64,000 nt of DNA from Blastocladiella emersonii ATCC 22665 (taxonomy: Eukaryota; Fungi; Blastocladiomycota), in assembly GCA_025594325.1 (NCBI GenBank), contig JANHCV010000002.1:124001-188000 (forward strand), in the 5' to 3' direction. This document shows positions 27,101 to 41,951 of the stretch, one piece after another. A program made the translations under genes and the position numbers. The notes beneath the pieces were generated by a model. The model worked only from the letters and a program-made list of their open reading frames with translations, ran no database searches and was not told the DNA's origin. The stretch's first letter is position 1, and the number at the start of each line of letters is the position of its first letter.

Positions 27101-28773
27101 CGCTGCGGTTCGACGCGGCGGCGGTGCGCGGCGACCGGTTCCGCATCGACGTGTTCGAGGCGTGGGGCGCGTCGACGGCCACCATGCACCACAACCTCCT
27201 GTCGCTGTTCCTGCCCGTGCACTCGCGGCTGCGCGAGCTGATCGTCGACCTGGTCCCGCCGCGCGTCGCGGCCAACCCGCCCGACCCGGGCCTCCTGCCG
27301 GCCGCTGCCGCTGCCCTCAACGACCGCCAGCGCCGCGTCATTGCGCAGTGCGCGGTCCATGACCAGGACTACACGCTGGTCGTCGGGATGCCCGGTACCG
27401 GCAAGTCGCACACGCTCGCGCACCTGCTCGCCACGCTCGTCCGTATGGGACTCCGCGTGCTGCTCTCGTCGCACACGCACAGCGCCGTCGACACGGTCCT
27501 GCTCAAGGCGAAAGAGCTCGCGGTCCCGTTCGTCCGGCTCGGCGAGTCGTCGCGCATCCACCCGGAGATCCGCTCCGCCATGGTCACGGGCCACGCGACG
27601 CCCGAGGCCGTCCAGGCGGCCGTCGACAACGCGCGCGTCGTCGGCGTGACGTGTCTCGGCGTCACCCACCCGCTGCTGTCCCCGCCGCCGCCCACGCCGC
27701 AGGACGGCGGTGGAGGCGCACTGGAGGGTGGAGGCGGCGGTGGCGGTGGCGGTGGGAACCGGACCAACGCGTCGGCGACGGCCATCACGGCGCGCGCCGC
27801 CATGTTCGACGTGTGCATCGTCGACGAGGCGTCGCAGATCGCGCTGCCGACGATCCTCGGCCCGCTGTCGTTCGCGCGCCGGTTCATTCTCGTCGGCGAC
27901 CACCACCAGCTCTCGCCCGTCGTCCGGTCCTCGGCCGCCGCCGCGGGCGGGCTCGCCAACTCGCTGTTCGAGCGGCTCATCGAGGCGCACCCGCGCGCGA
28001 CCGTCGACCTCGACGTCCAGTACCGCATGAACAAGGACATCATGGCCCTCGCCAACGCCACCACGTACCAGAACCGCCTCACGTGCGGGTCCCCCGCCGT
28101 CGCTAACCGCGCCTTGCCCCTGCGCCGCCCGCTTGCGGGGGGTTTGCCGCCGTGGATCCGCGCCGTCCTCGACGGACCCGCCGTCGCGTTCGTGCACGTC
28201 CCGCGCGCCGTCGAGACGACAGTCTCGGGTCCCGCACCCGCCGTGGGAACCACCGGAGGCGCGGGCCGCGGCGGCGGTGGGAACGGCGGCGGCGTGATCA
28301 ACACGGAGCAGGTCGACATGGTCCGCGCGCTCGTCACGGCGCTCGTCGTGCACGGCGTCCGCGCGCGGGACATTGGCGTGATCACGCCGTACCGCGCGCA
28401 GCTGCGTCGGATCGCGGCCGCGCTGCACCACCACCACGCGCCGGCGCGCGCGGCGGCCCAGCTTTCGGGGACCGCGCTCGCAGCCGCGCTCGTGGACGCG
28501 TCGGCGGCCGCGGACCTCGCGCCCGTCGAGTGCCTGACCATCGACCAGTACCAGGGCCGCGACAAGGACGTGATCGTGGTGTCGCTGGTCCGGTGCAACG
28601 CGCACGGCCAGGTCGGCGACCTGCTCATGGACTGGAAGCGGATCAACGTCGCGCTCACGCGCGCGAGGGCGAAGCTCGTCTTGATCGGGTGCGCGACCAC
28701 GCTGCGCAACTCGCTGCTCTGGACCACGTTCCTCGACGTGATTGAGCAGAATGGGTGGATGATCAGTGTGTGA
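24125..28773 (+). CDS. DNA2: DNA replication helicase/nuclease Dna2
   Basis: 65-nt intron 24626-24690. Nuclease motifs WSPTFGLKGKMDAT, LEMKTGK, QVLMY; Fe-S Cys (GCVRRAVL, CARCFQSAEC); SF1 helicase GMPGTGKS, DEASQ, LVGDHHQL, QYRMN, TIDQYQGRDKD, RINVALTRAR. Confidence 0.97.
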
Positions 28774-28894
28774 TATTGGTTGGGATAATGCGAGTGTAGC
28801 ATAGCCATCTGTTCGTTGTTTTGGAGAGGGACCCTAAACCTAACCCTCAACGCAAACCTGGAGGGGCGGCGTGGGGCCGCGAATGGGAAAGAGG

Positions 28895-28899
28895 AAAAA
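28895..28899 (-). terminator. RNA polymerase III terminator (T5) of the tRNA gene
   Basis: Minus strand reads ...GACGCTA ATG TTTTT CC, a few nt after the discriminator base. Confidence 0.7.
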
Positions 28900-28902
28900 C
28901 AT

Positions 28903-28974
28903 TAGCGTCTGTAGGTTTCGATCCTACGACCTCAGGGTTGTGAGCCCTGCGCGCTTCCTCTGCGACAAGACGCT
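28903..28974 (-). tRNA. Initiator-type tRNA body carrying a CAC anticodon (tRNAi-CAC)
   Basis: Minus strand AGCGTCT TG TCGC AGAGGAA GCGC G CAGGG CTCACAA CCCTG AGGTC GTAGG ATCGAAA CCTAC AGACGCT A (72 nt). A1:U72, G29-31:C39-41, A54/A60 T-loop and 7-nt D-loop are initiator hallmarks; anticodon CAC; U10:C25 mismatch. Confidence 0.9.
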
Positions 28975-29253
28975 TTAGTCGACCAAACATAGGTTTTAAT
29001 ATGTTCCGCTCTGCGTCGCCTTATACCTTGCTGTGAAGAGTGCCGACATCAGGCCCTCAGCACAGACGCGACGACGAGGCGAGCGAGCGGGGAAAATAAA
29101 CGTGCTTTAGATTGGCTTCGTAACTCTGCTGCGCCGTTGCAGCCTTATGACGGGGGTTGGTGTGGGTGGTTGCTATAGACAAAAAGGGCTCAGCCGCCAG
29201 CGGCGATGGGCATCGGGGGTGGGTGATATAGACAGGGTGGCGATGGTGCCGCT

Positions 29254-32200
29254 CTACTGCGGCAGGCTCGGGCCGGCGGACGGCGCGGGCCGCGCAGCGG
29301 CCTGGGCGGCGCCCGTGAGGACCGGGCGGTCGTTGGGCATGTACGCCGGCTGCGGGAGCGCGGCGGCCTCGAGCGGCGACTCGACACGGTGGCCGAACAC
29401 GCCGACACGGGGCAGCGACAGCGCAGCGGAGGTAGGGGGGGCCGGCATGGTCGCGTCTGCGGTCGTCGCGCTGGTCACCGGGGCCGACGAGGGCGCGCCG
29501 CTGGCCGACGAAGCAGCTGCGGCAGCGGCAGCAGCGGCACCTGCGCCGGTCGCGGTGCTCGGCTTGCGCTTGCGCTTCGAGGTGGCCGACGTGGACCCGG
29601 ACGCTGCCGCTGCCGCTGCCGCTGCCGCCGCGGTACTCGACCCGGACGCGTCCGCATCCGTGGCCCCCGCCTCGCCGCCGCTGCCGCCGCCGTTCGACTG
29701 CTTGCGCTTGCGCCCGCGCTCCTTCTGTGCGCGGTAGTCGCACACCTTACAGATCTTGCGCGCCTCCATGCCGAGCCGGTGGAACTCGGTGACGACGAGC
29801 TTGGACTCCTTGCACGACGCGCACTCGGCGTACTTGCCACGGTACCGCTCGCGGTACGCCGCGGCCGCCGCGTCCATGGCGCGCTGCCGCTTCTGCACGC
29901 ACGCGGCGCAGTACAGCGGCGACGACCGCATCAGCGTGCCCTCGGGCAGCGCGCACGCGGGGCACTCGCCGGGTGGGCGCGTCGGGGCGTTGGACGTGTC
30001 GGTACCGGTGCCGTCGGCGGCGGCGGGGGCGGCGAGGTCCGCGGCGGCCGTGGCGGTCAGGCCAGAGGCGTCCACGCCGAGCGCGACCGCGGACACGGCG
30101 GCCGTCATCGACTGCGCGCGGCGGCGCTTGGCCGTAGCCGCGGGCGACATCGAATCGACTGCGAGAGAGCCACGCCGGAGCCCCGCGGCGGCAGCAGCTG
30201 CAGCTGCAGCTTCGGCGTCGGTCGCCGCAGCCTCGGACACGGCGCCGACCTCAGTGGTGGGCCCCGTCTGGCTGCGGCGGCGGCCCTGGGCGGGAGTGGC
30301 GCCGGAAGAACCGGCCGCGGCAGCAGCAGCGGCAGCAGCAGCACGCGCCGACTTGTTCTTGGACGAGATGGCGAGCCCCGACGCGAACACGAGCGGCGGG
30401 TCCTTTTTAGTATCCGACGCGCCGCCCGCCGCCGCCGCCGCCGTCGACGACGACGATTTGGCGTTCCGCGTCGTGGACCGCAGCTGACGCTGGCGCGTGA
30501 CGGGCCCGCTGCGCGCCGGTGCCGGCGGGGCGGTGGCAGCCGTAGCCGAAGCGGCAACATCCACGTCCATGCGCTCCGCGTCCGCCGCACCCGCTGCCGC
30601 CGCGGGCGCCGGGTACGTCGACGGGATCGACACCGTGGTCCTGGGCGACGCGACCGTGACGTTGTTCCCGCGGCGCACAGCCGCCGCCGCCGTCGCCGCC
30701 GCGTGGGCGAGGTGGTGCGCGGCCGACGGCATCGAGAGGCATCGCTGGCGCGTGGCGCCCGCCGCCGTCGCGCGTGAAGCAGCACCGCTGCCAGTCGGCT
30801 CGATGGGCTGCGTGAGGAAGTGCTGCTGCTGGTCGGGCGCGCCCGACGCAAAGATGGACGCCGTCGACGGGCCGGCATCGGCGGCGCCCGGGATCACGAG
30901 CGCGGATGCGCCAATGGACCCGAATCCGGTCGGGCCGGCGGCGGGGATGGGCGAGGCGAGGTGGCGGCGCGGGTCGGTGGCGAAGACGGGCGAGTGCACG
31001 AGCATCGACGTGGTCCCGCCGCCGATGAGCGCGGCCGCAGCCGGGCTGGGCGCGGCGGCGAGGGCGACGGCGGACGCGAGCGACGCCATGTAGTCCGTGT
31101 ACTGGTTGCTGGCGGCGGGCATCGAGGCGCGGCGCGCCGCGAGCGCGTGCTGGTGCTGCTGCTGCTGCGACAGGACCTGCTGCTGCTGCTGCTGCTGGTG
31201 GTGGTCCTCGAGCGAGGGCGGCCGGTTGAGCTCGTGCGCGGCGGTCGGGAAGTCGCCGCCCATGCCCGTCGGCGTCGAGGACGTCGAGTCGATGCGGGCC
31301 TCGTCGTCCGAAGCCGCGCGCGCGCCCTCCTGCTGCTGCTGTTCAGCGGCCGGAGGAGCCGCGGCGGCGAGCGCGTCGGTGTTACCTCCGACCACGTCCA
31401 TGGGCTCGGCCGGGGCGGCGTTGCTGTCCTGCTGCTGCGGCACAAACTGCTCCTGGATCGCGGGGAACATCATGGCAGACTGGATCGCGCCCCAGCTGTT
31501 GGTGATCCCACCGGCGAGCCCCGCCGCCGCCGCCGCCATGTACCCGCCAGCGGTCGACGACGACGACGTGGTCGCAAAGTTGCCCGGCGTCGAGAGCGTG
31601 CGCTGGCGCTTCCGCGCGGGCCCCGTAACCGCGGCATCCGCGCCGTCGTCGCCGCCGCTCGGCGCGGCCCACTGCATCGTCACGGGCATCGCCATCTGCT
31701 CGACGAGCGCGGCCATGTCGGCGGCGGCCGCGACCGAGTGGTTGGGCGTGATGGGCGGCGAGTACGGGCCGGGCGGGACCGCGGCGTACGCGGACGGCGG
31801 GATCGTGTTGAGCGGCGCGAGGTGTGAGTGCGACGATGACAGCGGCGCGAGCGTCATACTGCCAGAGGCGGCGTCCGTGAACCGGTGCGGCGCGTCGGCG
31901 CCGGGCGTCGGGAGCGCGAGCCCACCAAACGTGCCGGACGCGCCGGGGCCGATGCCCGCGCCGGTCAGGAGCGTGGCGCTGCCGAGGAGCTCGAGGGTGA
32001 TCGGGGCGGTCGTGGTGGCGGCGGGGGCGAGGTACGCCGAGACCGCGGGCTGCGCGGACCCAGCGACGGCGAGCGGCGACGCGGGCGACGACGACGTGGC
32101 CGAGTGGCCGTTCCCGCTTCCCGAGTCGGTGGTGTTGGTCGAGGACGCGAGAGCAAGCGCCTCGTGCTGCTCGAACAAGTGCTCGAAACTCATCTCGGCG

Positions 32201-34162
32201 TGCAGGTTGGGGCCCTGGAGGAGCGGGTCGGGCTCGAACAGGTTGGTCGCGGCGGACTCGGGCGCCTGCTGCTGCTGCTGCTGCGACGACTGCGCCGGCG
32301 GCGGCGGGAGCGCCTGGCCCACGTCGTCGTCGTCGAGGTCGGCGAGAATGTCGTACGGCGCGTCCTCGTCGGTCCCGGCGGTCCCGCCCGTGCTCGAGTT
32401 GCCGGTCCCCGTGCAGTCGCGGATGACGGCGGGCGGAATGGCGATGCGGTCGAGGACGAACGGCGACTCGTCGCTCTGCTGCTGCTCGGCCTGGCTGTTG
32501 TTGGCGGCGAGGTGGAAGGAGCCGGTGCCGATGCCGTGGACGTCGGGCGTGGCGGGGTTGGTCGAGTTGGGGGTCGGGTAGATGGGTTGCCGGTGCTGCT
32601 GCTTGGCCTGGTTCGCGGCGGCGGCCGAGATGAGGGCAGCAGCCTGCGACATGGTGTCGGTCGACGACGACATGGCCATGGGGTATACTTGCTGCTGCTG
32701 CTGCTGGCCGCTCGATGGCGAAAAGTCTGCTCGTGCGAGTCATGCTGAGGTCAATAAAGGTGTCCATTAGGGTAGAAAAGAGCGGGGGAGCAGGGTGTAA
32801 AGTAGCAACGTGTCGACGGGCAGACACCTTGGTGCGCGAACTCGGAGGCGAGACGCTCGCTACTGATGGAGGACGGCGGCGGGGGATGTTCGAAAGCGTA
32901 CCGTAGATGGACCCGCCCGTTCCGATCTCGACGCCGCGACTTTGGGTCATGGTCATGAACTGGTTGTGCCGTAGTAGCCTGGAAGGATGGTTAGCTTCAA
33001 CGATGGTCGCAGCGACGAGAAGTGAGCACAAGCGTACTCTTCCATGGGCGACGGCAGCGTGATGTTGGCGAACCCCGAACCGTCAGCAGACGCCTTGTCA
33101 GTGATCTGCTGTGGCAAGGGCAGCGGCGACGAGAGCGACGACAGCTGCGACGCGGGGCTCTGGCGGTCGGCGCCCTCGTGGAGCAGGGCCGCATCGGGGA
33201 GCTGGAAGTTGAGCCCGTGCTGCTGCTGCTGTTGCTGCTGCTGGAGAATGAGCGACCCGTCGGCCGAGTAGTCGTGCGGGCTAGCGAGAGGGGAAGCGAA
33301 GCGAGGAGCGCGTGAGCACTGCAGGTCACGCGGACATGAACCCCAAGGGGTGCCGATTGGTTCCTCCAGCCGCGCTGCGCTGCGCGAAAGAAAAGCGAAA
33401 CGCCACACGAAGCGGCACGAAACGAAAAGCGAAGACATACATGTTCCACGCAGCCGTTCCGAGACCCGTGCCCGGGCCAAAGACGGGTGACGCGTGCGAG
33501 GCCGCAGCGGCCGCCGCGGTGGCCATCCACGACTCGGCGGCGTTGGCGGCGTCGGTGGCCGAGGGCGACCCGAACATGCGGTGGTACGTGATGCCGGGCG
33601 CGAGGACGCCGGGGACGCCAAAAAGGGCGGCGGCGTTGGCGCTGGCGGCGCGCGCCTGCTGGTTGTGCGCCGCGTTCATGGACAGGGCGGCGAGGCTCGG
33701 GGTGAGGAGCGAGGACGCGGGCCCGGCGGCGAAGGCGAGCTGCGTGGAAAGCGTCGGGTCCACGTCCATGGCCGAGTGCTGCTGCTGCGGGTACTGCTCG
33801 GTCTGCTGCTGCTGCTGCTGCTGCTGCCGGCTCTGCGCGTCGTAGTTGTGGTACTGGTAGACGACGGGCGACCCGACAAAGCCCGGTGCGCCGGCGGTGG
33901 CGAGGAAGTTGGGCGACGCGTAATCGGCGAGCGACACGGCGGCAAAGTCGTGCTGCTGGAGGTGCGGGTGCGAGTAGGTCGGGAGGAAGAGCGGGTCGGC
34001 GGCTGATGGCGGGGCGCCGTCGTTACCGCTGCCGGGCAAGGGCGCGAACGAGGCCGACGAGGCGGTTGGTGGCGGCGGGGGCAGCGGTGGTGGCGGGAGC
34101 GGCGGGGGCAGCGAGGGCGACATGGACGCGTGTTGCTGCTGCGGGTGCTCGTGTTGATGCAT
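29254..34162 (-). CDS. Large Gln/Ala/Ser-rich low-complexity protein with C-terminal CxxC clusters and basic NLS-like motifs (putative transcription regulator)
   Basis: Three in-phase GT-AG introns join MHQHEHPQQQ... (34162), PHDYSADG...SPMEE, LLRHNQF...SIY and ORF 29254..32679. The C-terminus has CPAC..CAAC..CASC..CKVC followed by RGRKRK and KRKRK. Confidence 0.7.
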
Positions 34163-40279: not shown

Positions 40280-41951
40280 TTTCATTCTTCCCAACTGCCC
40301 GTCACTTCCTGTTGTCGTCACTCCTCTCGCGGAGCGCCCTGTCATTGCAATATAAGCCGATCGTTCCCATACCATACTCGCTGTGGATCAGAAAAGTTGT
40401 TCGTGACAGTCGCGAATCGAGAGATCAGACCATATTGCGCTGTATCTCGTAATCCTCATCCTCCTCCGTACTGGCTGAATGGTAGCAGTTTCCACCGCCA
40501 GAGTCAAGAACGGTACACGCGCGAGGCCAATCTTTGTCGTAGCAAACCGGTCACTGTACCGCTGTTCGTCCAGCTGGCCAAGCTCGCTCTCACTGGCGGT
40601 ACGCGTAACACGCTGCCGCTTCGACTGGGCGGCACCGGACTAGGCCGCAGGCCCTATATAGCAAGCAAGAAACCGTTACGACCGTGGGAGCAAGAATCGC
40701 CCGTCTCAAGCCGCGTGCGCTTGCTGCGGTCGCTCGTGCGGGGCGGCGAGTCGGACATCACGAAGCAGGACTACGCGACACGAAGAAAGCCCACATCAGA
40801 CATAAGTTGCATTGTAAAGCGCATTGCATCAGGTTACGTGTAGTCAAGCTTACATTCAGCGTTTCCTGGGAGAGAGAGGTGGGGACGCAGCAGAGCTTCG
40901 TTCACCCGTGCACCACTCGCGTGAATGCGTCACCTGTGCTGGAACGTGCTCCGTCATCACGACTGCCATCATGACGTTGTTTCGCAAAAAGGGGGCACGG
41001 CAAGCACCGCTCGGGACTCGTTGCCGCGCCAGCCTGCTTCGAGCTGTGCCGTGAGGTCATGTTGACCGCAGTCTCGTCACGTCGGCGTCGACACACGTTC
41101 CGCGGAACCCTCCGACAGTGATGCGCACCTCGTACGCCGTGTCGGTGGTGCGCGCGCCGCACGAGTGCGACGGGGCGTCAACGACGGGCATTACGGTTAA
41201 GGTCCCCGACGGCGCGTCGTCGATCAAGCCGCATGACGTGGAACAATGGGCCCGCCATCTTGACCAGCAGTACGCTGATATGGGCTTCAGTGGTTACGGC
41301 CGACACGGTCACCCGCGTCGTGAAAGATGCGTGCGGTAGCAAGACCAAGGGTAGAGGGTATGCGGTCAGCGAGAGCTAGGACACGATTGTCGGCTAGTAG
41401 AAGTATGAGGATCGAGCCAAAGTAGCAACGCAGCCGCCAATGTGAGCGACACAAAATATGAAGGCCAAAGTAGCAACATAGCGCTGTCAGAACGATTCGG
41501 CTCCACGGCGCGCCCAAGGAATGGGAGGGCGGCCAAGATCCTCGATGGCACGGCGAGCGCACGAAGGCGCCCGCAGCGTGCCCGCCTCCCTTTTCGGAGC
41601 CGAATCCATGCATCGTCTTCCAGCGTTCGTATGGTGTCTTGTGTGAGAAACACAAGGTAGATATCTCCTAGATACAAGATCCTAAGAGTAAAGTCGATGG
41701 TGAGCAAAAGAGGAGGGCGAGGGCGCGCGGGTTTATATACTCCCGCGGACCGGGAACGGCGCGCGGCGGCACGGCACGGCGGGCAGGGACAGGGCCAGCG
41801 GGGTGGCGCAGCACGGCGCGCGCGAGACGGATTTGCGTTCGAGGTCATCCGCGGTCAGGTGGCCCGTTGGTGGCGCCGCCGAGGACTCTGGCGTCGACGC
41901 GCCGCCGATCCAAGGACCCGCTCGTTCCCGCCCCCCTGCCCCATCACTTCA

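Follow-up and report, generated by a model that had tools for sequence, protein, structure and literature searches.

In the window analysed here, i.e., the whole 64-kb stretch of DNA from Blastocladiella emersonii ATCC 22665, a 72-nt tRNA gene at positions 28903-28974 (minus strand) combines a eukaryotic initiator-Met body with the anticodon CAC. We conclude that this gene is probably an incipient pseudogene, a young, unselected mutant copy of the B. emersonii initiator tRNA-Met gene. The decaying copy is supported by the identity to the canonical initiator gene of the same genome at 70 of 72 positions, by the approximately 55-fold depth of that canonical CAT gene, and by a mismatch at the 10:25 pair that is absent from the natural genes sampled.

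ARAGORN reported a single tRNA for the whole 64 kb, a minus-strand gene at 28903-28974, and labelled it tRNA-Val(CAC) after its anticodon. The Rfam tRNA model (RF00005) matched the same positions end to end with 54.9 bits (gathering score 29), and the single non-standard pair in the alignment was 10:25. The ARAGORN label is set by the anticodon alone and is wrong about the body. Both the sequence and the Rfam alignment contain the initiator hallmarks A1:U72 and C3:G70; the anticodon stem is CAGGG/CCCUG, in which G29-G31 are paired with C39-C41 to give three consecutive G:C pairs; the D loop (AGAGGAA) is 7 nt long and includes A20; and A73 is present. The B box, or T-arm signature, GGATCGAAACC (28914-28924, minus strand) is intact, with A54 and A60 both carried by the T-loop element GGAUCGAAACC, and the acceptor, anticodon and T stems are all perfect. 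An elongator-type body would have T54, a pyrimidine at position 60 and a 1:72 pair other than A:U, whereas A54, A60 and A1:U72 are found here. Compared with elongator tRNA-Val(CAC), the tRNA of the window is alike in its CAC anticodon, A73 and G45, but it differs in A1:U72, in A54 and A60 (rather than T54 and a pyrimidine at 60) and in the GGG:CCC anticodon stem. The features A1:U72, C3:G70, the three G:C pairs of the anticodon stem, A20, A54, A60 and A73 are shared with the canonical B. emersonii initiator copies and with the yeast IMT genes. The differences from the canonical initiator genes are the anticodon CAC instead of CAU, the unpaired U10:C25, and the position at a dispersed single locus with unrelated flanks.

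The anticodon (tRNA positions 34-36) occupies 28940-28942 on the minus strand, lies in the loop CU-CAC-AA and reads GTG on the plus strand, where a eukaryotic initiator tRNA-Met carries CAU. At 28940, i.e., tRNA position 36, the gene of the window has C and the multi-copy canonical gene has T. The D stem, which in initiator tRNAs has four base pairs including a paired 10:25, contains a U:C mismatch here, with U at position 10 (28965, minus strand) opposite C25 (28951); this position is given by the Rfam non-standard pair and by contig break-points. The same substitution falls in the A-box region TGTCGCAGAGG (28957-28967, minus strand), where the conserved G10 is replaced by T. G10 is a conserved A-box position, as well as a site of tertiary pairing and modification. 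A run of five T at 28895-28899 (minus strand), 4-8 nt past the 3' end, is a candidate RNA polymerase III terminator. On the other side of the gene, at -19 to -27, an AT-rich patch ATATTAAAA (28993-29001, minus strand) stands in a genome with a composition of about 70% G+C. This patch is private to the gene of the window: the 30-nt upstream flank of the canonical copies, taken from the loose-end consensus behind 28974, has no such patch. An earlier note on this DNA had described the 72-nt initiator-type cloverleaf, the CAC in the anticodon loop, the T5 run and the AT-rich patch, and this description proved accurate in every detail checked against the sequence, ARAGORN and Rfam; the U10:C25 mismatch in the D stem, to which the note had also drawn attention, is the pair that Rfam flags as non-standard.

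The gene is located in a gap of ~480 bp, across which Dna2 and a convergent long ORF (minus strand, 29254-32679) face each other with their 3' ends. The long ORF ending at 28773 is 100% identical to Dna2 of B. emersonii ATCC 22665, encoded on a 2.84-Mb contig. A permissive Rfam scan of 28300-29600 found no RNA remnant besides the tRNA at 28903-28974, and the possibility that the locus is a piece of a tRNA cassette was rejected for lack of such neighbouring remnants. A short telomere-like patch of the CCCTAA type was observed at 28832-28851, between the Dna2 stop and the tRNA terminator, with no link to the tRNA seen. Elsewhere in the window, there is a full-length U3 snoRNA gene at 41482-41697 on the minus strand (Rfam RF00012, 70.1 bits, E 3e-13).

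The earlier note had also proposed a search for the syntenic locus 3' of Dna2 in related genomes. In the three relatives compared, Allomyces macrogynus, A. javanicus and an uncultured organism, the 10 kb around Dna2 contained no tRNA. The Dna2 proteins of these three relatives are 42-44% identical to that of B. emersonii. Because the relatives are that distant, the absence of synteny says little and is weak evidence.

To compare the gene with the canonical initiator genes of B. emersonii, we aligned the contigs of three DNA runs (X1, X2 and X3), all from one sample of ATCC 22665, to 28789-29088 at 80% likeness, a threshold chosen so that paralogues align too. Every run has one short, very deep contig that spans the whole tRNA with just two other letters. 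In X1, this is record 4 (105 nt, covering 28903-28974), with a depth of 6540 compared to 119.5 for the single-copy flank (record 1); in X2, it is record 8, with 1682 compared to 146; and in X3, record 11, with 372 compared to 15. The match between the gene of the window and this canonical gene extends over all but two of the 72 positions, and X1, X2 and X3 agree on both differences. The first difference is at 28940, where the high-depth contigs of all three runs have A instead of G on the plus strand, which yields the anticodon CAT. The second is near the end of the aligned piece and was placed at 28965 (tRNA position 10) by the contig break-points: record 6 of X2 ends at 28964 and its records 7 and 8 start at 28935, i.e., they overlap by 30 nt, as contigs of a k=31 graph do. 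At position 10, the canonical letter is most simply G, because C25 is unchanged and no natural gene sampled is mismatched there. We infer that the gene of the window is the canonical initiator gene with two substitutions, G10-to-U and U36-to-C, where the site of the former and the canonical G are deduced as described.

The copy numbers of initiator genes were derived from contig depth, not from gene counting. In X1, the depths of record 1 (119.5) and record 2 (294.5, a second flank type) sum to approximately that of record 3, the joint node (445), and record 3 together with record 5 (5848, a third flank type) approximates the body contig, record 4 (6540). These depths correspond to about 1 + 2.5 + 49 copies, of which the ~49 have identical flanks on both sides, over at least 30-159 nt. 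Overall, the canonical CAT gene is at about 55x single-copy depth in the HiFi-type run, and at 11-25x in the two other runs. High depth and identical flanks are the pattern of tandem amplification, and the initiator supply of B. emersonii seems to come from a tandem array. The gene in the window shares nearly its whole body sequence with the other copies but has unrelated flanks. A mitochondrial origin of the high-depth contig was also considered; the mitochondrion is about 44-fold over-covered in the B. emersonii data (PMC9730499), and the mitochondrial genome of a related Blastocladiella is given as about 33% G+C (PMC7748703). This origin was rejected on account of the 70/72 match to a nuclear-type initiator (A1:U72, eukaryotic T loop) and of flanks with 47-57% G+C, which are not AT-rich.

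The earlier note had asked for the letter at 28940 to be confirmed. We checked it in assembled contigs, all from one sample, with a divided outcome: the HiFi assembly and one flank-linked Illumina contig of X3 read G, while the flank-linked contigs of X2 read A, and X1 has no aligned contig with G at 28940. Specifically, record 10 of X3 (28910-29088, 0 differences) has G28940, the locus-specific letter at 28965 and the unique flank on one contig. In X2, the flank-linked contigs are record 6 (28789-28964) and record 7 (28935-29088), both with A at 28940, and record 7 combines this A (CAT) with the locus-specific letter at 28965 (U10). CAC might accordingly not be the true or sole state of the locus, either through a mistake in assembly or consensus or because a second allele or cell lineage carries CAT; the X2 and X1 contigs speak for this, and so does the fact that the assembly authors had to purge duplicated contigs, making some heterozygosity possible (PMC9730499). 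We consider this improbable. Against it stand the G-bearing X3 contig, linked without any difference to the unique flank, and the published assembly itself, for which PacBio HiFi reads of 10 kb gave about 186-fold coverage (6.37 Gb for 34.27 Mb), with subsequent Pilon polishing by 65-nt Illumina reads (PMC9730499). Mis-polishing from the ~55 canonical copies would push 28940 toward CAT, so CAC is unlikely to have been made by polishing. A k-mer graph is also prone to lose rare branches next to a 10-55x deeper one. The A at 28940 in X2 is a probable assembly-graph artefact, since contig builders drop low-depth branches beside 10-55x deeper ones and error k-mers from the ~1700-fold canonical depth can bridge paths. 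Finally, the U10 defect stays even if CAT is true. It should be noted that if the combination of U10 and CAT in X2 were a real allele or an intermediate, the D-stem change would predate the anticodon change.

We then asked how the two substitutions compare with natural variation. Metagenome and viral collections were scanned for the signature of the initiator anticodon arm plus T loop, in CAC and CAT forms. The CAC form matched 0 metagenome contigs and 0 viral contigs, compared to at least 120 metagenome stretches for the CAT form. From the CAT loci among the metagenome matches listed, 128 natural initiator genes were extracted, all of which contain the 11-mer GGATCGAAACC by construction of the search pattern. 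Among these 128 listed genes, the 10:25 pair is G:C in 82, G:U in 30 and A:U in 14, and the remaining two are mis-registered and have 6-7 mismatches in their stems; a 10:25 mismatch was thus found in none of the 126 well-formed initiator genes among the matches listed. Zero stem mismatch was the rule (112 of the 128 listed). As far as can be judged from these sequences, U10:C25 is outside the natural range among the initiator genes sampled. The nearest intact initiator genes among the matches listed score 61-66 bits on the Rfam tRNA model versus 54.9 here, that is, the gene of the window is 6-11 bits lower. Folding with ViennaRNA points the same way: with U10, the best predicted fold is a mis-paired alternative and not the cloverleaf, whereas with G10 restored in silico the molecule is about 3.7 kcal/mol more stable and the cloverleaf has the lowest energy. 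The anticodon change had no effect on folding.

Two side observations concern the metagenome genes themselves. The closest natural relative of the B. emersonii initiator gene among the matches listed is a gene at positions 590-661 of contig L029, present also in contigs L072 and L116 with identical flanks (30 nt upstream, 25 nt downstream); it differs from the inferred canonical gene at 4 positions, which are both sides of the acceptor pairs 2:71 and 7:66, and is probably from an uncultured relative. In addition, six contigs (L049, L031, L044, L067, L070 and L075) have two or three initiator tRNA genes each, spaced 100-2500 bp, so clustered initiator genes are not peculiar to B. emersonii.

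We propose that a dispersed initiator copy recently acquired G10 to U and U36 to C and would now have escaped the selection under which the other copies stay identical. Given unrelated flanks around a body that differs at only 2/72 sites, this locus probably held a working initiator gene until recently. One change would have struck a universally paired, promoter-relevant position, and the other the anticodon; given about 55 good copies, the loss of one would be neutral. The G10 to U substitution is expected to weaken both the A box and the D arm, and may in this way reduce transcription and the stability of the product. Nuclear surveillance is known to target initiator tRNAs that are structurally weak. 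MetRS, which needs CAU, would presumably refuse any mature product, given that the anticodon alone separates methionine from valine identity (PMC9976931). Weak charging by ValRS would be possible, in view of A35, C36, A73 and G45, with G20 missing. As approximately one gene in 55, and a handicapped one, the locus would contribute negligible, unselected GUG initiation, at most a trace of Val-initiated GUG starts.

Among the three readings offered in the earlier note, the young pseudogene is the one favoured by the canonical sequence plus two substitutions, the broken 10:25 pair, the ~55 CAT copies and the absence of a CAC initiator body from the relatives and metagenome contigs searched. Near-identity to a multi-copy parent is combined here with a substitution at a structurally conserved site, as expected of a tRNA pseudogene or decaying paralogue. 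In natural nematode populations, anticodon mutations that switch the isotype segregate at low frequency (PMC13010820), which indicates that such variants arise readily. Several points weigh against a decaying copy. Judged by its intact B box, T5 terminator, perfect acceptor, anticodon and T stems and AT-rich upstream patch, the gene may still be transcribed; two substitutions are too few for statistical proof of relaxed constraint; and initiator tRNAs are absent from the 75 anticodon shifts surveyed in PMC3923123, such that a change of this kind is a rare event, which could mean that it is usually harmful or that it is special here.

A first alternative is a gene that is still active but has no selected role. 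The tRNA would be transcribed, matured, charged by ValRS and loaded on eIF2 through its initiator body, and would produce a low background of Val starts at GUG that is tolerated as the gene is outnumbered. The intact B box, the terminator and the three perfect stems are consistent with such activity. Engineered anticodon-mutant initiators speak in its favour as well: in work by Drabkin and RajBhandary in 1998, such tRNAs reportedly initiated with other amino acids when placed in mammalian cells. The eIF2 preference for the methionyl moiety counts against an active Val-charged initiator. With respect to charging, the valine identity set consists of A35, C36, A73, G45 and G20, with determinants mapped mainly in E. 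coli (PMC9976931), and the account of Val and Met identity in the earlier note agrees with this review. The tRNA of the window has the valine determinants A35, C36, A73 and G45, but A20 in place of the minor determinant G20. The U10:C25 mismatch, the change in the A box and a cloverleaf that is predicted to be no longer the best fold also argue against activity, and we regard this reading as unlikely.

The headline of the earlier note was a possible dedicated GUG-initiator tRNA. In this reading, the gene would be a natural initiator for GUG start codons, delivering Val or Met and kept by selection. Such a gene could be a second natural initiator, pairing perfectly with GUG, charged with valine and opening GUG-started frames in a very G+C-rich genome, an idea that, on the features of this sequence, has very little likelihood. 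The combination of a full initiator body and a valine anticodon is indeed very rare (0 metagenome or viral matches, none in the 75 surveyed shifts), the gene has its own terminator and AT-rich upstream patch, and GUG codons are plentiful in a genome of 70% G+C. A dedicated GUG initiator nevertheless has no positive support, and against it stand a single copy versus about 55 canonical CAT copies, a structural defect at 10:25 that is absent from the working initiator genes sampled, and no conserved counterpart in the relatives, nor a CAC body in relatives or metagenomes. Moreover, no change beyond the anticodon looks like an adjustment of the gene to another synthetase or codon. With a general GUG initiator, translation would start in many spurious frames. 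A dedicated function of this kind therefore appears highly improbable.

The remaining proposal of the note was editing of C36 to U in the transcript, which would restore a CAU initiator. C-to-U editing of tRNA anticodons is known in a few organellar systems, but to our knowledge it has not been described for fungal cytosolic tRNAs. Nothing was found in favour of this proposal: with about 55 CAT genes, editing would be superfluous, and it would leave the U10 defect unexplained, which makes it extremely improbable.

Evolution of tRNA genes through anticodon shifts is known, with 75 shifts in the survey of Rogers and Griffiths-Jones 2014, of which 0 involve an initiator tRNA (PMC3923123). The gene of the window resembles alloacceptor-shift or "isotype-mismatch" tRNA genes in that it is a paralogue in which one anticodon substitution gave the anticodon of another amino acid; unlike the surveyed genes, it has an initiator body. 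It also resembles the engineered anticodon-mutant initiators of the RajBhandary and Schulman laboratories and of recent orthogonal-initiation work (e.g., bioRxiv 10.1101/2021.05.25.445580), in which an initiator body is likewise combined with a non-Met anticodon. The engineered initiators, however, are over-expressed laboratory constructs with an intact D stem, whereas the gene described here is natural, single, defective in its D stem and known from sequence alone. Engineered initiators of this type are charged according to the new anticodon and start at the matching codon.

Anticodon-shifted decaying tRNA copies are already known, and the present case is notable only for the initiator body. 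For annotators, it is a warning that the label tRNA-Val(CAC) misreads the body of the gene. If the gene did work as a GUG initiator, it would be the first eukaryotic initiator tRNA found in nature for a non-AUG codon, and start codons in B. emersonii would have to be annotated differently. As a decaying copy, it would provide a clean natural example of a multi-copy tRNA family shedding a copy. Its changed anticodon is also a rarity for an initiator body, with no such case among the 75 surveyed shifts (PMC3923123). Read depth, in turn, suggests that the initiator tRNA of B. emersonii is supplied by a highly amplified gene set.
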